This document shows positions 2,026 to 19,462 of a stretch of 22,775 nucleotides of DNA, one piece after another (position 1 is the first letter of the stretch; each line of letters begins with the position of its first letter). Below the pieces are notes generated by a model, which was given only the letters and a program-made list of their open reading frames with translations, ran no database searches and was not told the origin of the DNA. A program made the position numbers and the translations under genes. Source of the stretch: Octopus sinensis (taxonomy: Eukaryota); the NCBI RefSeq assembly GCF_006345805.1, contig NW_021836755.1, forward strand, positions 1-22,775, in the 5' to 3' direction.

Positions 2026-3224
2026 ATATATATACTATATATATATATATATGTATATTATATACAAGGATATTATATATAATGTATATTATACGGACAC
2101 AATTATACATTGAATGAGTTCACGGACTTATATATACATGTGTGTACAAATGTATCTATCCATGTTCGTTCGTTTCTGAATGATTGAATGTATGTTTGTA
2201 TGTACACACACACAACACACACACACACACACAAACACATACATACATACACAGACATATACAACAAGGTATTTTAATGATAAATTAATATATTATGATG
2301 TATCAAATACATTATATATAGGTGGCTAAAGCAATCAAAAAGCAAAAGGGTAGAATTCAAAAATAAGGGTGCAAATAACACCTACAATTGCTAGAAATAG
2401 GAGCTAAATCATATAAGCCAAATAGCCGCACAAAACCATTATCTCATGAGTTGTTCAGGGGACTTCGAGCGACAAGCCTCACCATCTTTCTCCATATATA
2501 TCAAATTTATAATGGCAACATATATAAGTATATATACATACATATACGTACATAAACACACAGACAGGCCCCAAGATGCACGCATGCACACACACACACA
2601 TACACAGAGAAATACACACATATATATATACATAGATATCAAATATGCACACAATGTATACAGAACGCACAGTTATATCCTGTTCAGAGATAAGAAGAAT
2701 TCAAAAGGATTCTATGCTAATCCAACCAAAGACAATAACACCAAGAACGAAGCCTTATAAAAATTATCGAACGTGTAGTTGTCTTAAGCTTCTAATGTTG
2801 TCGAAAGGGGGAGAATAGCCGAAGATTATGCGCATGCGTGATACACTGAAACACACAAACCCGCAACAGGAGCATATATGCATACACACACACACACAAG
2901 CATAAATACATACATGCAAATCATACATACACTCATGCACGTTTCACAAATCAATGTGCACGCATATAAACGTAAATATATACATATTCGTACACCTACT
3001 CTTATATACACCAGCATATCACACAGAAGGTGAGTTTCGGGGAGAGAATAGGCGGTAAAGGCAGAGGGAGGCGGAGATTAAGAAAAATCTATGAGGTAGG
3101 TAAGTATATTGAGATAGGTCTACATTTAGTGATATATTTCTCAAACAAAAGATTGAGCACTACATATATATACGCGTATGCTTATGCATATATGCATATC
3201 CATATATATACATATATACCCCAA

Positions 3225-3264
<40 letters not shown>

Positions 3265-3282
3265 TTATATTATATATATATA

Positions 3283-3361
<79 letters not shown>

Positions 3362-3363
<2 letters not shown>

Positions 3364-3720
3364 CATAGGAGTGGCTGTGTGGTAAATAGCATGCTTACGA
3401 ACCACATGGTTCCGGGTTCAGTCCACTGCGTGGCGCCTTGGGCAAGTATCTTCTACTATAGCCTAGGGCCGATCAATGCCTTGTGAGTGAATTTCGTAGA
3501 CGGAAACTGAAAGAAGCCCGTCCTATATATGTATATATATATGTGTATATGTATATGTGTGTACATGTTTGTGTGTCTCTATTTGTCTGTGTTTGTCCCC
3601 CCAACATCGCTTGACAACCGATGCTGGTGTGTTTACGTGCCCGTAACTTAGCTGTTCAGCAAAAGAGATCGATAGAATAAGTACTAGGCTTACTAAGAAT
3701 AAGTCCTGCGGTCGATTTGC
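3362..3720 (+). mobile_element. Family-A tRNA-derived SINE, nearly full length, 3' tail truncated by (TA)n
   Basis: A-box TGGCTGTGTGG and B-box-like GGGTTCAGTCC. A CORE-like ccttgggcaagtatcttctactatagcc segment, an internal TA/TG microsatellite and the 3' half are all present. Confidence 0.85.
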
Positions 3721-3907
3721 TATATATATATATATATATATATATATTACGGAGATGTACTTGCATAGCGAGTGACTTGATCAGAGTTCGTGCGCTGGAA
3801 CGAAAACGATTGCAGCGTGGAAGGTGTTTATAAGCCATTTAAGAAACACGCAAAAACGTTAGATTTATATATATATATACATTACATATATATATATATA
3901 TATATAT

Positions 3908-3952
<45 letters not shown>

Positions 3953-4231
3953 ATATATATATATATACTTATGTATATATCTTCATACTTAGGTTAGTTA
4001 AATATTTTTGTGGCTGTTTTTAGAAATCTTCTATTACTGTAAAATGTGCAAAAAACCAAACAAACAAAACTTCTGCTATAAGGGAGATTTTTTTTCTTTC
4101 GACGGTAACTGCAATGAATGTGCCTTTAGAAGTTGATATATGTCACAAATATATTTTAACTAATCCAATGTTCGCTTATGCCCAAACACTGTTGGCGCTG
4201 ACACTGCTTCACTCGCGCACACAAGCACATG

Positions 4232-4293
<62 letters not shown>

Positions 4294-5660
4294 ATACAGA
4301 GAATCCACTATGTGGACGCTCTTACGCTAGATATAGATCCGCAAATGGAATCCACCGCTAAGAATTGTTCTCAAAGAATAATTCAACACACACATAGTGG
4401 ATTCTCTCGTATAGTTGTGTATTAATAATATTTACTGAATCTCAGTCTTTTATACGCTAGGCCACTTGGTGTTTAAATTGGTGTTATTAAAAATTAATAT
4501 CCAATTTTTTCCCCCTTAATTTGACTTTAATTATGTATATATATATATACGTATATATGTATATATATATAGTTCACAATACAGCAAATATGTCATTTTG
4601 GTATCCCTTTCACATTGAAACACACGCACAAATAATGAATATAATTCCGCATGAATGTGTTGGCTCATTCAAGGACCCACAAACACGTACACATACACAT
4701 GTCATGTTCAATGAAACATTAGAAAACATGGAGTACACAAAGGGATCAATATTCAATGTTTCCCAGATAAATAACCTCTAATCCCACCCGTTTATCAGTT
4801 TACATATAACAACAAATGTGGTAAATAACCAATTCTAGAATTAATAACTAAACTCTATCAACCGGGTGTTTACTAAAAGCTACATAAGAAGAACAATATG
4901 AAAGATAGCTATAGGTGCACAGGAACCACAAATTACGTCACCGAATTTACGAACAGCTAATTATCTAGAAACGAACAGCTTATAACCGAATGTAGGTGCA
5001 GCTGAAATAAATGAAATCCCTGCATGTAAAGCGGATGCCCATAAGGCAACCGTAAAGAATAATCGATTTAAACTATATCTGAACAACAAGTGTGATATTC
5101 GAAGCTTGACATGAACAATACGCATTGTTCACTTCCCACAGTATATACACGAAGAATGGTATGTATGCATCGAAATATATTTACAATTCAAGGAACAGTC
5201 TGTAAGTATAAACAGAGTAACAATAGATACTTCTAACAATCACATAAAATTTCTCTGGGACATTCCTTCCCTTGTGAACCGAGGGAAAAAACGATAAAAC
5301 CTGTATCTGAGAAATTTTTCAAGTCCATACACAATATACTGCCGCATATTCGCAGAACGTATTGTCTTATCATAGATAACAGTACAGAAGGGTCAAAATG
5401 TCGCCACCAAAGCCCATTTTCGACCTAAGTAACAAAATATATGTATAATATTCATATTATACATTAGGGAAAGAGGCAGGATTAACGCCGAGAGGTGATA
5501 TTTATCCCCACTTAAACGTAGATGTTCTGTTGGAAAAAGTATACTGCGGTAGTTGTCACGAGAGAAACTCTCATGTTGGCTTTTGGTGAAAAATGAACTG
5601 ATGTTAATCTTGCTGGTGGAAAGATAAATTCTTGCCCCATCTAGTGTCGATGCCACCAGT

Positions 5661-6909: not shown

Positions 6910-7591
6910 GTTATCTGCTACTTGCTTCGGTCATTTGACTGTGGCCAATCTGGGGCACTGCGTCGTAGAGTGTTAGTCGAACAAATCGAGCTACTTTTTT
7001 TAAAGAAATGTATTTATTCTGTTGGTCTTTTATAATCATCATTGTTCGACCGTGGTCGAGACAAAGGAATTTACTATGTTACGCCAGACTTCAAGGTCCA
7101 TCATAGTATTACGGAGGCCCTGTTGCTGGATGCTTGTATCCCTGGAGATTACATCAGGGTAGGAGAGTGTGCGCCCTCTGGTATCGCGAGGAGATGGCTT
7201 CCAGAGGAGAAGAGTAGAAATTAACTCGTTTTCAGCTCTACAAAAATGTCCAGCAAACTGAACTCTTCTACCTTTCACAAGAGATGATACAGGTGGTAAT
7301 TTCCCATATATTTGTACTTTGGTTGGATGACGCCTCCAAGTGATATTTTGAGGACGTAAACACACTAATACCAGTTGTCAAGCGTTAGTGGTGGACAAAC
7401 ATAGACACAAAGAAATAAACATACACACATGCACAAACATATACATATATACTGCGGGCGTATTTCAGTTTCGCTAACCAAATCCAGTCACAAGGCTTTG
7501 GTCAACCCATGGCTATAGTAGAAAACTCTTGCCGAAAATGCTTTGTCGCTGGGAAGCGCAAGCTTCGCGCCACACAACCACGCCTACGCCT
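6910..7591 (-). mobile_element. Family-A SINE interrupted by an RTE fragment, B-box region deleted
   Basis: Head aggcgtaggcgtggttgtgtgg at 7591 and ctactatagcc core. The 3' half is split between 7351-7410 and 6910-7031. Confidence 0.7.
7033..7350 (-). mobile_element. 5'-truncated RTE-clade LINE (ORF C-terminus plus short TGA-repeat tail)
   Basis: Open frame QNITWRRHPTKVQIYGKLPPVSSLVKGRRVQFAGHFCRAENELISTLLLWKPSPRDTRGRTLSYPDVISRDT...AMMD-like...EVWRNIV resembles the post-RT C-terminal region of RTE ORFs (I.W..H.T...IYG, RR..FAGH, LLW.P, R.W). Confidence 0.8.
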
Positions 7592-10059: not shown

Positions 10060-10191
10060 CGTTTAAATTCGGCGGTGAATTTGTCAGCGGACGGTTTAGC
10101 TTAATGGTGAATCATGTATCCGCAGTCTTTGAAAGATACAGGTTTGAGTCCCTTCGTTGTTTGCTAACAATTATTTTCCCGCCTTGTAACG
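10060..10191 (+). CDS. Candidate internal exon (phase 1-1) FKFGGEFVSGRFSLMVNHVSAVFERYRFESLRCLLTIIFPPCN
   Basis: gtatttag|CG...AAC G|gtaatt, open frame, phase-compatible with 13214. The acceptor is weak. Confidence 0.18.
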
Positions 10192-10296
10192 GTAATTTAC
10201 CCATTATTTTTGATGTTCTAAGGGCAAATCTGCGTGCCATAAAGATATCAACTTATATCTATCGATAAATAAATAAATATATATATGTATATATAT

Positions 10297-10610
10297 GGTC
10301 GTCGTGGCACTCCGTCAGTTAAGCCGACGAGGTTTCCAGTTGATCCGATCAAGAGAACAGCCCACTCGTGAAATTAATGTGCCAGTGACAAGCCTGGCCC
10401 TTCGAAACACAGGTACAACAGAAACAGGAAGAAAGAGTGAGAGAAAGTTGTGGTGAAAGAATACGGCAGAGTTCGCAACCACCCCTTTCTGGAGCCTCAT
10501 TGAGCTTTAGGTGTTTTTACTCAAACATTCACAACGCCCGGTCTGGGAATCGAAACCGCGATCCTATGACCGCGAGTCCGCTGCCTTAACTACTGGGCCA
10601 TTGCGCCTCC
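10297..10610 (-). mobile_element. Family-C tRNA-derived SINE, apparently with an internal deletion
   Basis: Head ggaggcgcaatggcccagtagttaaggcagcggactcgcggtcataggatcgcggtttcgattcccagaccggg has clear A and B boxes. The tail is ...gatcggatcaactggaaacc...gacggagtgccac. Confidence 0.8.
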
Positions 10611-10621
10611 ACTATATATAA

Positions 10622-10994
10622 GGCAGAATCGTTAGCACGCCGGGCGAAATGCGAAGCCGTATTTCGTCTGCCGTTACGTTCTGAGTTCAAATTCCGCCAA
10701 GGTCAACTTTGCCTTTCATCCTTTCGGGGTCGATAAATTAATAATCGACTTAATCCCTTTGTCTGTCCTTGTTTGTCCTCTCTGTGTTTAGCCCCTTGTG
10801 GGTAGTAAAGAAATGGGTATTTCGTCTGCCGTTACGTTGTGAGTTCAAATTCCGCCGAGGTCGACTTTGCCTTTCATCCTTTCGGGGTCGATTAAATAAG
10901 TACCAGTTACGTACTGGTGTCGATGTAATAGACTTAATCCCTTTGTCTGTTCTTGTTTGTCCCCTCCATGTTTAGCCCCCCGTAAGCGATAAAG

Positions 10995-10999
<5 letters not shown>
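10622..10999 (+). mobile_element. Family-B SINE as a head-to-tail dimer (10622-10816 with an internal deletion; 10817-10999 lacking the A-box head)
   Basis: gtatttcgtctgccgttacgtt.tgagttcaaattccgcc...cctttcggggtcgat...cttaatccctttgtctgt...gtttagcccc occurs twice. B-box GAGTTCAAATTCC. Confidence 0.85.
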
Positions 11000-11046
<47 letters not shown>

Positions 11047-11347: not shown

Positions 11348-11693
11348 ATCAATTTTATATATATATATATAATATATATAGCGCTTAGGCATAGTGATGG
11401 CAATAACCAGGTGTTAGAACTTAATATAGTTATGGTTCAGAAAAAGCAGTCGAGTACAGACTATCATAAGACATTATATAAATGACAAAGGAACAGGAAT
11501 TTATGTAAAGAGTTTCAATAGATTACGGCTGTTTCTGCTATGGGACGCAATGCACCCCTATTTGAGTACGGATGTAACACATGAAGACTCCGAGCTTTCA
11601 GGCTCCTGCGAAGGTACAGCGTGATACTTAAGCTTTCTATTATAGGTGAATTGCTTATGCAAGCTTATGTAAATATGTATGTATGTAAACAGG

Positions 11694-11926
11694 TATGTCT
11701 TTACTACCCACATGGGGCTAAACACAGAGGGAACAAACACGGACAGACAAACGAATTAAGTCGATTACATCGACTCCAGTGCGTAACTGGTATTTAATTT
11801 ATCGACCCCGAAAGGATGAAAGGTAAAGTCGACCTCGGCGGAAATTGAACTCAGAACGTAACGGCAGACGAAATACGGCTTCGCATTTCGCCCAGCGTGC
11901 TAACGTTTCTGCTAGCTCACCGTCTT
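11694..11926 (-). mobile_element. Family-B SINE, full-length monomer
   Basis: Reverse complement aagacggtgagctagcagaaacgttagcacgctgggcgaaatgcgaagccgtatttcgtctgccgttacgttctgagttc..., highly similar to 10622-10999. Confidence 0.85.
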
Positions 11927-15829: not shown

Positions 15830-16006
15830 AGCCAAGGCTGTGGGGTTAAGGCGCTCGTTGGTAACCGCGAGGTTTTGAGTTCTACTTGACACCTTAGACT
15901 AGTGTCTTCTACTACCGACTCGGGCTCATCAACGGCTTGTGAGTGAATTTGGTAGTCGGAAATTTTGGAAGCTCGTCCTTTATACAGATTTACATGTATG
16001 TGTGTG

Positions 16007-16052
<46 letters not shown>

Positions 16053-16084
16053 ATATTATATATATTATATATATATATATATTA

Positions 16085-16115
<31 letters not shown>

Positions 16116-16355
16116 GTGTGTGTGTGTATGAATGGGTACGCGTCATTGTATCTATGTTTCTCACACCACTGCTTCACAACTGGTGTTTGTTTGTCCAGTC
16201 ATGTAATCTAGCGGTTCGGCAGAAATAACCGATAGAATAAGTACAAAGCTTTATAAAAGAAAGCAACCACTGAGATAGATTTGTTTGACTAAAACACTTT
16301 CAAGCTGTCATTATGAGCGTAGTCCAATGACTAAGACAAATAAAAGATGAAAAAT
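15830..16355 (+). mobile_element. Family-A-related SINE, diverged, with expanded internal (TA)n
   Basis: ggctgtggggttaaggcgctc...gagttc...gtgtcttctactac...ttgtgagtgaatttggtag, then ...gtaatctagcggttcggcagaaataaccgatagaataagtac...aataaaagatg. Confidence 0.65.
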
Positions 16356-16651
16356 TTAGTAACTTAAAGGGCAGTTTTGAGAATTTAAAAAGAAAATCCG
16401 ATTCGCTATTATCGATTAGGTCTATGTTTACATGTATTCCAGCTGTTGAAGTGAATAATGTATGAGTACATTTTCCCACGAGCATTTCTATTTTCGATTC
16501 AGTACGATTAGAAATTTGGTTCCTTTTACTCTAGATTTGAGCCACCATTTAGCTGCCCCTTCGTTGGCCCGCAGGTTAGCGTTAGAATCTGGACGATATT
16601 ATTTACATTATTTACATTTGACGGATATTTGTCTTCATCTTGTTTGTTGTT

Positions 16652-16697
16652 AACACAACGTTTCAGCTGATATAGCCTCCAGCCTTCATCAGGTGTC
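16652..16697 (-). ncRNA. Minimal type I hammerhead ribozyme motif
   Basis: GACAC-CUGAUGA-A-GGCUG-GAGGCUAUAU-CAGCU-GAAA-CGUU^-GUGUU. Core intact, helix I 5 bp, helix II 5 bp closed by a G-U pair, ACGU palindrome. Cleavage predicted at 16657/16656. Confidence 0.8.
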
Positions 16698-16760
16698 TTG
16701 GGGAAATTTCGAACCTGCGTTCTCATTCCTAAGGTATTTATCGATGTTGCTGTTGTTGCT

Positions 16761-16948
16761 ATCATCATCATCATCATCATCGTCATCGTGATCATCGTCA
16801 TCGTCATCATCGTCATCGTCGTCATCGTCATCATCGTCATCATCATCGTCATCGTCATCATCGTCGTCATTTTTCTTCTTCTTCTTCTTCTTTCTTCTTC
16901 TTCTTCTTCTTCTTCTTCTCCTTCTTCTTCTTCTTCTTCTTCTTCTTC
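16761..16948. repeat. Compound trinucleotide microsatellite (ATC/GTC)n-(TTC)n
   Basis: Read directly from the sequence. Confidence 0.95.
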
Positions 16949-17024
16949 ATGTCACTGCCTGGAATGGAACTAGGAATCTTGACGTTAGTAGCCCGCGCCC
17001 TTAAGCACTACGCCATATGCCCGC

Positions 17025-17086
17025 GGACATAGTGCTTCAGAGCGCAGGCTACTAACCCCAAGGTTCCGAGTTCGATTGGAACAGTC
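17025..17086 (+). mobile_element. Inverted second copy of the tRNA-derived head (A-box partly deleted)
   Basis: tagtgcttcagagcgcaggctactaaccccaaggttccgagttcgatt aligns with the reverse complement of 16951-17022. B-box GAGTTCGATT. Confidence 0.7.
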
Positions 17087-17109
17087 ATTTCAATGAGGAG
17101 GCATGATTT

Positions 17110-17230
17110 TTGTCTGAAGATTTTCATCCCGTTCGTCCTTGATAGCTGACCAGAGGGGTCGGTGTAATCGACTGGCCCCGCTTCTCACAAATTTCAGACC
17201 TTCAGCTAACAGTAGAAAACATTATTACAC
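17110..17230 (+). mobile_element. Family-B-related SINE 3' fragment
   Basis: tttcatccc...ggggtcggtgtaatcgact...caaatttcag...agtagaaaacattatta. Confidence 0.5.
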
Positions 17231-18138
17231 TGCTAACTGGAATACTACTGTTAATAATCATAATTATAGAAAAGAGGGTGATAGTAATGATTTCAATGTA
17301 TTATTCCCATGAAACTAGCTAGAAGCAATGCAATGAACAAGAAATAACAACGTAAATATATATAGAAAGCGTTTGAAAAGATAACAAAAAGTAGAGATAA
17401 TACCAGCAGATACAATTTTCTTGATAATATCAATGTCAGTAACTTAGGACCAATCGTAAGGACCTAAAGAACTTCGATTACCCTGATGAGATAGTGTAAG
17501 AGCTTTCTACAGGCGCATACATCGGTCTACTGGCGCATAGTTCAAGCACACCTCTTCACTTATAAATCAATTTTCAACAACTATAACTATACTTTATGTT
17601 ATGTACATCAAAGGCCCAATACGCAGAGGACAGCAGATGACGAACTACACAATCTATAGTAATTAGGTGATTTCAATAAGGATAAATTAGAACCCAAAGC
17701 GACAATAACAATAACAATGGTTTATAAACATATGATGTAAACAAGACAAAACCCACTAGTTTAAAAGGATGCACCCTAAATAATGTCCCATATTTTTTGC
17801 AACGGCAAACGACAGAAGCAAATCAATTTACGCAGCTCGAGTTTTAACAAGAAAATTTCCTCTATTTAAGGCAGTTTGTCTTCTTAGTAATTCCCAGAGT
17901 GTGAATTGTATGTACGAGAATTATTCAACAAGCAATTTTTCTCGAACCACAGATACATACGTAGTTACATACATACACATAAACATGTTTACACACACAC
18001 ACACACATACATATATATATATACACTTAACTATTTATATATATGCCAACTATATATATATATATATATATATACACACTGGTATATAAGTATCACTATA
18101 TATCATATATACAAGCATATGTATATATATGTACGTAA

Positions 18139-19063: not shown

Positions 19064-19462
19064 TTCTTTTACTCATTTACTTGTTTCAGTCATTTGATTG
19101 TGGCCATGTTGGAGCACCGCCTTTAGTCGAGCAAATCGACGCGAGGACTTATACTTTGGAAGTAAGGTACTTATTCTATCGGTTTCTTTTGCCGAACCGC
19201 TAAGTTACGGGGACGTAAACGCACCAGCATCGGTTGTCAAGCGATGTTGGGGGGGGGGCAAACACATACAAACAAACACACACACACATACATATATATA
19301 TATACATATAAACGTCGGGCTTCTTTCAGTTTTCGTCTACCAAATCCACTCACAAGGCTTTGGTCGGCCCGAGGCTATAGTAGAAGACACTTGCCCAAGG
19401 TGTCACGCAGTGGGAATGAATCCGGAACAATGTGGTTGGTAAGCAAGCTTCTTACCACACAT
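19064..19462 (-). mobile_element. Family-A SINE, near full length and well preserved
   Basis: gtgtggtaagaagcttgcttaccaaccacattgttccggattcattcccactgcgtgacaccttgggcaagtgtcttctactatagcc through to the tail gaaacaagtaaatgagtaaaaga. Confidence 0.9.

Follow-up and report, generated by a model that had tools for sequence, protein, structure and literature searches.

A tRNA-headed, SINE-like element of octopods with a minimal hammerhead motif of the Penelope-like type

We analysed a stretch of 22,775 nucleotides from Octopus sinensis (RefSeq assembly GCF_006345805.1, contig NW_021836755.1, positions 1 to 22,775 of the forward strand; hereafter, the window), whose minus strand carries, from 17022 to 16595, a repeat resembling a short interspersed nuclear element (SINE). 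This element joins a tRNA-derived head, a microsatellite linker and a 3' module that contains a minimal hammerhead ribozyme motif of the type known from Penelope-like elements (PLEs); it belongs to a family of octopods, and the combination was previously known from a flatworm. A preliminary description of the window had listed these parts on the minus strand, and all of them were found where it had placed them, including the A box, the anticodon-like CTACTAA, an imperfect B box (9/11) and a hammerhead with an intact core, for which our own search returned the same predicted cleavage position, 16657. Full-text literature searches retrieved no description of this head and hammerhead combination in cephalopods and none of hammerheads in octopus; the only cephalopod hammerheads mentioned were 235 matches to Rfam Hammerhead_1 in the giant squid genome.

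The hammerhead was located with a descriptor consisting of a helix I of at least 4 bp, a CTGATGA box with an optional bulge, a helix II of at least 4 bp, and GAAA followed by a self-complementary insert of 0-6 nt, a U and then a base other than G. The descriptor matched exactly once in the window, with C3 at 16692 and predicted cleavage after 16657, at a chance rate of 3.3e-4 per window (3000 dinucleotide-preserving shuffles); under a stricter setting, which the real site also passes, the shuffles gave 0 matches. The window copy reads GACAC-CUGAUGA-A-GGCUGG..UCAGCU-GAAA-CG-UU/GUGUU (slash, predicted cleavage) and shows type-I topology, with an open helix I of 5 bp (GACAC with GUGUU, one G.U included), the core CUGAUGA ... 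GAAA, the triplet GUU (H17 not G) and a helix II of 6 bp. It has no helix III or loop 3, and positions 15.2-16.2 form a palindromic ACGU (16661-16658) that the consensus of the nine DNA copies described below retains; an unpaired base between A9 and 10.1 (A16685) is likewise kept in the consensus and in the more distant group 2 relatives. The nine-copy consensus, GGACAC-CUGAUGA-A-GGCUGG-AGGGUAUA-UCAGCC-GAAA-CG-UU-GUGUU, also preserves the core and is more canonical than the window copy, because a G10.1-C11.1 pair is present in the consensus and in group 2 (CAGCC, CGGCC) where the window has G.U (CAGCU). Cervera and de la Pena (PMC4209133) described hallmarks of PLE minimal hammerheads (min-HHRs) that go beyond their own search descriptor or are typical of PLE motifs, and four of them occur in the consensus: the extra base between A9 and G10.1, the G10.1-C11.1 pair, the palindromic 15.2-16.2 without loop 3, and a short helix I with a longer helix II. 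This indicates that the motif is ancestral to the family and not a chance feature of one copy, and the features match the PLE minimal type proposed in the preliminary description. The minimum-energy fold of the isolated 46-mer contains helices I and II, and the hammerhead lies ca. 55 nt from the 3' end of the element.

The consensus of the available heads, GGGCATATGGCGTAGTGCTTAAGAGCGCAGGCTACTAACCCCAAGATTCCGAGTTCGATTCCAGGCAGTGACC, can be numbered as a 73-nt tRNA without gaps, with the A box from position 8, C32-U33-ACU-A37-A38 at positions 32-38 and A-G-T54-T55-C56-G57-A58-T-T-C61-C62 at positions 52-62. The spacing from A box to B box is exactly 44 nt, as in tRNA genes, and the window contains three A/B pairs with such matches and spacing, against an expectation of 0.043 per shuffled window. 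The family-consensus B box, AGTTCGATTCC, matches at 10/11 positions, and the CTACTAA heptamer is kept in the window element, its inverted partner and copies L010d and L010i. A SINE head usually retains the promoter after losing the cloverleaf, and the retained boxes suggest that RNA polymerase III (Pol III) may use this one. From 17216 to 16396 the minus strand contains no run of four or more T, hence no T4 terminator before the hammerhead, which extends the T-run-free interval already noted between head and ribozyme. The two further A/B pairs with exact 44-nt tRNA spacing, TAGCTTAATGG..GGTTTGAGTCC at 10097-10151 (+) and TGGCCCAGTAG..GTTTCGATTCC at 10600-10546 (-), presumably represent the heads of further tRNA-derived SINEs, and ARAGORN detects no tRNA at either.

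Table 1. Features of the hammerhead-bearing element and its inverted partner in the window
Feature	Position	Strand	Basis or remark
SINE-like element, full-length copy	16595..17022	-	Head + expanded linker + hammerhead module
73-nt head, begins GGGCATA	16950..17022	-	Colinear with tRNA numbering (head alignment/consensus); cloverleaf stems lost
A-box-like TGGCGTAGTGC	17005..17015	-	10/11 match to TRGCNNAGTGG; tRNA position 8
Anticodon-loop-like heptamer CTACTAA	16985..16991	-	tRNA positions 32-38
B-box-like AGTTCCATTCC	16961..16971	-	9/11 match; tRNA position 52
(GAA)25 microsatellite, first linker part	16873..16948	-	Tandem Repeats Finder
(GAT/GAC)n microsatellite, second linker part	16761..16870	-	Tandem Repeats Finder
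3' module of ca. 150 nt, common to all family copies	16595..16745	-	Alignment/consensus; nhmmer E = 9e-45
Minimal type-I hammerhead	16652..16697	-	Descriptor match + shuffle control; predicted cleavage between 16657 and 16656
3' end motif AATGTAAATAATGTAAATAAT, two units in all family copies	16598..16618	-	Tandem Repeats Finder
Head-to-head partner	17025..17290	+	Same head family, then different SINE body; 3' end approximate

The family to which the element belongs was revealed only by an exhaustive phmmer search, and not by word-indexed ones. Using the 78-aa translation of 16762-16529 as a query against 1.84 billion cluster representatives, we retrieved 60 clusters, all of which align over residues 13-58, that is, over the hammerhead and the 60 nt after it, to the NVNNVNN encoded by AATGTAAATAATGTAAATAAT. 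After removal of two clusters of unrelated repeat proteins (P0005 and P0010), the rest fall into two groups. Group 1 proteins have the form MRTQVRNFPKTPDEGWRVYQLKRCVNNKQDEDKYPSNVNNVNN and come from Logan contigs of runs SRR11869384-94, which also contain the abundant octopus SINE; two members are from O. bimaculoides, one being the predicted N-terminus of dystrobrevin beta isoform X1 (XP_052825882.1). Group 2 proteins (...SRVRQTPEEGWRTYRPKRCGNNNKDEDNSPKTLNDKN...) show the core CUGAAGA and a helix II GGCCG/CGGCC, often in 43-aa tandem units; the hammerhead motif is also conserved in this divergent group. Word-indexed protein searches yielded one match for the open reading frame (ORF) in the hammerhead frame (O. 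bimaculoides A0A0L8FV75, 86% identical) and none for the ORF of the partner SINE or that of the opposite strand. Exact-protein look-ups of the window ORFs and of P0001 gave no record, and DNA pattern scans of metagenome and prokaryote genome collections gave no matches. The family may well be hidden among the 893 SINE families that are left unclassified in O. vulgaris.

Some of these proteins deserve a comment of their own. P0001 is UniProt A0A0L8FV75, a 51-aa 'uncharacterized protein' that is an ORF artefact of the module, and the changes that it implies (C15.2 to A and G1.3 to A) would disrupt both the palindrome and helix I. P0034 is XP_052825882.1 (O. bimaculoides, GCA_001194135.2), a predicted dystrobrevin beta isoform X1 of 94 aa whose first ca. 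33 residues, MPMGIWHSGEGWRVYQPKCCVNNKQDEDKYPSK, are a translation of the hammerhead module, so that an alternative first exon of this gene model seems to come from a copy of the element. Among group 2 proteins (e.g. P0021, P0038-P0040, P0043, P0044 and P0046), many begin with MANGIRTGDPRGFNKGRSSKF, ca. 20-30 residues before the hammerhead; ANGIRT, when back-translated, resembles the antisense of a tRNA T-arm plus acceptor end, GGGATTCGAACC, and so the tRNA-like part may have the opposite orientation in the group 2 lineage.

Logan contigs for six of the proteins and one cluster member covered seven independent loci and provided nine copies of the module as DNA. Head and module were found together, in the same order and on the same strand, at four of the five loci with readable upstream DNA: the window, L010 (two copies), L015 and L001. 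At L010 the head is followed by the module after only ca. 25 nt, CTGAATAATAACATAGGAAAAATG, and a second full copy lies head-to-head with the first; L015 shows the T-arm/B-box region of the head, a 45-nt linker and the module; and in L001 the GGGCATATGGCG of the window stands at the start and is separated from the module by an A-rich stretch. The fifth readable locus, L005, is an inverted pair truncated within the module, and the contigs of L003, L004 and L007 break off where the linker would be, within (AAT)n or (TAC)n(GAT)n, with (GAT)n directly upstream of the module in L004, as in the window. In the fetched DNA, matches to a hidden Markov model (HMM) of the head occur only directly upstream of modules. 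Because they co-occur in order and strand at independent loci, we conclude that head, microsatellite-prone linker and hammerhead module form one element.

The limits of this element are also shared. In the window, nhmmer with the family HMMs placed the head at 17037-16929 and the module at 16740-16595 of the minus strand, boundaries that agree with those of the other copies; L010 and L015 measure ca. 250-280 nt between defined 5' and 3' ends and have unrelated flanks, the compact unit being of ca. 260 nt. Copies diverge just past the conserved 3' end motif, which Tandem Repeats Finder reports in the window as (ATGTAAATA)x2.3 (16618-16598, minus strand); no family copy shows a poly(A) or a variable 3' repeat, the repeat being fixed at two units. 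L015, the only solo copy with both flanks, has a possible interrupted repeat, ATAAAC..TCAGAAATT, judged by eye when checking for target-site duplications. A BLAST comparison of the window with itself detected no second copy of the module, and the head matched only its inverted neighbour.

The preliminary description had taken head, linker and hammerhead as a single SINE-like element with ends at 17022 and 16599, an idea that would fall if both parts occurred mostly apart; the independent copies bear it out, and the predicted ends coincide with the family boundaries. It fared less well with the linker, because the GAA/GAT/GAC stretch of ca. 190 bp is present but does not characterize the family: other copies have short AAT-rich linkers or other microsatellites at the same place, and that of the window is a local expansion of a short AAT-rich linker, which is prone to microsatellite expansion. 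The window as a whole is very rich in microsatellites (130 rows in Tandem Repeats Finder, mostly (TA)n, (TG)n and (TGTA)n), and these dominate every repeat search of it.

An inverted partner adjoins the 5' end of the element at four loci. In the window it consists of a head with a different body and in L010 of a full copy; L005 has two copies, both cut short within the module, and at L001 no more than the last 50 nt of the partner are left. The head of the window partner (17025-17100, plus strand) is 83% identical to that of the element (z = 13.4), and its body is weakly like a SINE family found at 11925-11690 (z = 2.2) and at 10817-10990; there is no match to the module HMM, hence no hammerhead module, in 17025-17290, and neither local nor chained alignment found similarity between the partner body and the sequence that follows the microsatellite in the element. 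The inverted head copy of the preliminary description is therefore real, with the correction that its body belongs to another SINE type. An interim reading, in which the element's head was a partial inverted duplicate of this neighbouring SINE, lying incidentally beside a tail unlike that SINE's body, was overturned by the family data. Insertions of PLEs with an inverted, 5'-truncated copy next to the upstream end were reported by Craig et al. (PMC8557442), and min-HHR pairs on opposite strands, 100-700 bp apart, were noted by Cervera and de la Pena (PMC4209133). The only Rfam matches obtained are microRNA look-alikes, because the two inverted heads (window 16965-17075) form a hairpin of ca. 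110 nt with sub-threshold matches to MIR1151 (33 bits) and mir-77 (28 bits); the head-to-head pair of L010 draws the same microRNA-precursor look-alikes, which are structural and not family members.

Copies differ widely in their state of preservation. Identity to the nine-copy consensus is 95% for the window copy, which has a single structural change (C to U at 11.1, turning G-C into G.U), and 73-85% for the other copies. Across 12 sequences, the helices are 74.6% paired, as compared to 20-45% when the partner strand is slid, and helix I positions are 70.7% paired; groups 1 and 2 differ at one pair of helix II, where both bases are changed (U-A vs C-G). Selection on inserted copies was considered and rejected, because pair counts in these 12 sequences show no covariation beyond that of shuffles, and the alternation of W/R and Q/R in the proteins, used as a stand-in for pair 10.4-11.4, agrees with independent decay of CpG sites. 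Once inserted, copies thus decay neutrally, which is what one would expect if source copies alone matter.

Together, our results favour, with a probability of roughly 0.7, that 17022-16595 is a copy, young in appearance, of a family of non-autonomous, SINE-like retroelements of octopods, with a 73-nt tRNA-derived head, an AAT/GAA-rich linker and a hammerhead module of ca. 150 nt, which would be made by Pol III and copied by a PLE. Pol III would start at the internal promoter and read through to the hammerhead, since no T4 run occurs until 16396. Having no helix III of its own and a palindromic ACGU, the hammerhead would need to pair with another copy to become active, and the cut would then fall after U16657; published PLE min-HHRs cleave poorly, and only as dimers (PMC4209133), and self-cleavage of the octopus motif is likewise predicted for a dimer. 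The reverse transcriptase and endonuclease of a PLE, and not a long interspersed nuclear element (LINE), would copy the RNA to new sites, a mode of copying that often yields an inverted partner at the 5' end. A PLE is our best guess for the partner, to which the inverted partners, the lack of poly(A) and a tandem relative point circumstantially. In O. vulgaris PLEs abound and have been active recently, with 30 Penelope families and 329 young insertions, and SINEs make up 11.6% of the genome (PMC13282606); a 2026 preprint argues that the retrozymes of animals derive from PLEs and are non-autonomous. The complete scheme, that is, a true partnership of SINE and PLE with its own Pol III promoter, dimer-dependent processing by a PLE-type hammerhead and copying by PLE reverse transcriptase and endonuclease, is offered tentatively, and we would put it at somewhat less than even odds.

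A number of results weigh against this account. ARAGORN detected no tRNA in the window and the Rfam tRNA model had no match at E <= 10 in the window or at E <= 1 in L010, L015 and L001; the head has no cloverleaf and folds no better than shuffled sequence, and covariance models fail on it because its stems no longer pair. The Rfam hammerhead families (Hammerhead_1, _3, _II, HH9 and HH10) had no match at E <= 10 in slices of 100-180 nt; the canonical type-I hammerhead represented by Hammerhead_1 has a helix III, whereas the octopus motif does not. The window copy carries G.U, and not G-C, at 10.1-11.1, and in a 91-nt context an alternative fold with a GUUGU/ACAAC hairpin is more stable by 4.6 kcal/mol. 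Among the nine DNA copies only that of the window has an intact core, the other eight being broken; column conservation is 0.82 inside the hammerhead and 0.79 outside, i.e. without a real excess, and the lack of covariation means that nothing shows selection on the inserted copies. Cleavage would detach the 3' 55 nt of the Pol III transcript, which is awkward for a reverse transcriptase that recognises the 3' end, and inverted partners put the ribozymes on opposite strands, so that they supply no dimer in cis. Finally, the partner in the window combines the same head with another body, there is no reverse transcriptase or GIY-YIG ORF in the 22.8-kb window or on the family contigs (Pfam gave no matches for ten window ORFs), and the loci with readable upstream DNA are only five.

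Among the alternatives, the one that survives best, which we nonetheless consider unlikely, is a conventional LINE-dependent SINE, with a module taken from the 3' end of an octopus LINE (e.g. CR1, RTE or Dong-R4), a hammerhead that is a relic without a role, and inverted partners that result from template switching or twin priming in LINE-type reverse transcription. Both tRNA-derived SINEs and LINEs abound in octopus genomes, the partner at 17025-17290 bears the same head on an ordinary SINE body, and the neutral decay of copies gives no sign of ribozyme selection, all of which would fit. The short direct repeat at the 3' end, (ATGTAAATA)x2, loosely resembles stringent-type LINE tails as well, although it is fixed at two units in all copies instead of being variable. 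It is harder to reconcile with this explanation that the consensus has four features specific to PLE min-HHRs, unexpected of a chance relic, that the motif is conserved in a second, divergent group forming tandem arrays, and that variably 5'-truncated inverted partners are a described hallmark of PLEs (PMC8557442).

Less probable still is that the element is a solo or truncated pseudo-long terminal repeat (pLTR) of an autonomous PLE, whose pLTR happens to include a tRNA-derived stretch. PLE hammerheads do sit in pLTRs, most genomic min-HHRs are single and thought to be truncated PLEs (PMC4209133), and inverted and tandem arrangements are PLE features (PMC8557442); however, the octopus copies in L010 and L015 have defined ends within unrelated flanks, the 5' end of the element coincides with tRNA position 1, and the missing reverse transcriptase and GIY-YIG ORFs, in the window and on every contig, count here against an autonomous PLE. 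That a fragment of a SINE head, a microsatellite and a hammerhead fragment, all mutually unrelated, lie together merely by chance, as suggested by the lack of a second copy of either part elsewhere in the window, inverted head aside, and by the different body of that adjacent head, is very improbable, because the same order of head, linker and module recurs at three other independent loci, and every copy has an AAT-rich linker or a microsatellite at that junction.

The nearest precedent for the octopus element is Sm-alpha of Schistosoma mansoni, also a short non-coding repeat with a tRNA-derived region and a type-I hammerhead. Ferbeyre et al. are said to have described Pol III A and B boxes in Sm-alpha in 1998. 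There is no sequence similarity between both elements, which come from different host phyla. The Sm-alpha hammerhead is canonical and fast-cleaving, with a helix III and loop-loop contacts, whereas the octopus motif is of the minimal PLE type without helix III; likewise, Sm-alpha forms tandem arrays, whereas the octopus copies are dispersed singles or head-to-head pairs. Sm-alpha has been classified as a non-autonomous retrotransposon with a type-I hammerhead (PMC6155905), and its unit contains a tRNA-Glu sequence (PMC4918200, Fig. 7).

The closest resemblance of the hammerhead itself is to the PLE min-HHRs (Cervera and de la Pena 2014), with which it shares a 5-bp helix I, the unpaired base between A9 and G10.1, the consensus G10.1-C11.1, and a palindromic 15.2-16.2 without loop 3, implying action as a dimer; helix II, reported to be of 6-8 bp, has 6 bp in octopus. 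Wide sequence variation among copies and motif pairs on opposite strands are also common to both, and most published min-HHRs are solitary as well (PMC4209133). They differ in context, because PLE min-HHRs lie in pLTRs flanking a reverse transcriptase/GIY-YIG ORF, whereas the octopus motif is in the 3' module of a unit of ca. 260 nt with a tRNA-like head.

Animal non-LTR retrozymes are, like the octopus element, non-coding and non-autonomous, carry type-I hammerheads and have been proposed to depend on PLEs. However, they are tandem, processed to circular RNAs and reportedly promoterless, whereas that of octopus is dispersed and carries both an A and a B box. Head-to-tail tandem units do not occur among the octopus family copies, which are single or head-to-head; only a divergent relative of the module, in L017, is tandem. 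This retrozyme-like relative (10097-10516 of ENA ERZ21867824, ctg122172l) is an array of 2.8 units of 129 bp, preceded by an inverted unit and with degenerate hammerhead cores; a LINE-type, not PLE, reverse transcriptase ORF lies 4.7 kb upstream of the array, at 3162-5246.

With the tRNA-derived SINEs of octopus (Ohshima and Okada 1994, and the unclassified families of O. vulgaris), which we compared through their copies in the window, the element shares the plan of head, microsatellite-prone linker and 3' body, as seen in the copies at 3363-3712 and 15836-16352; it differs in its 3' body, which is unrelated and carries a hammerhead. These two copies (both on the plus strand), and another at ca. 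19100-19420 (minus strand), belong to the abundant octopus SINE and have an internal TA/TG microsatellite between head and body; that at 15836-16352 ends ca. 240 bp from the 3' end of the hammerhead element.

Other repeats of the window include an inverted repeat, 10817-11027 / 11666-11876, of 211 nt, with 84% complementarity and 638 nt between its arms, which are two copies of another SINE family (GGTGAGCTAGCAGAAACGTTAGCACGC...GGGGTCGATAAATTAAATACC...) weakly similar to the partner body at 17100-17290. An ORF fragment at 7042-7377 (minus strand), ..ITWRRHPTKVQIYGKLPP.., looks on visual comparison like the C-terminal end of the LINE reverse transcriptase of L017, ..SWRQHPTRLQLYGHLPP.., and is probably a LINE remnant; it has no Pfam match.

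For annotation, this family matters because its linker seeds long microsatellites and because it yields spurious proteins such as A0A0L8FV75, as well as the predicted first exon of a dystrobrevin beta isoform of O. bimaculoides. More generally, the role of PLE minimal hammerheads is still called unknown and animal retrozymes have been reported without a promoter of their own, and here a head of recognisable Pol III type, a hammerhead of the PLE type and insertion scars like those of PLEs come together in a genome with abundant and recently active PLEs and SINEs. An element of ca. 260 nt is a small, defined substrate with which to ask which polymerase transcribes it, whether it is cleaved in vivo and whether a PLE can mobilise a SINE. 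If the partnership proposed here is true, PLE hammerheads would be shown to act on a defined small RNA, and there would be a third way of making SINEs, besides dependence on a LINE tail and on poly(A).

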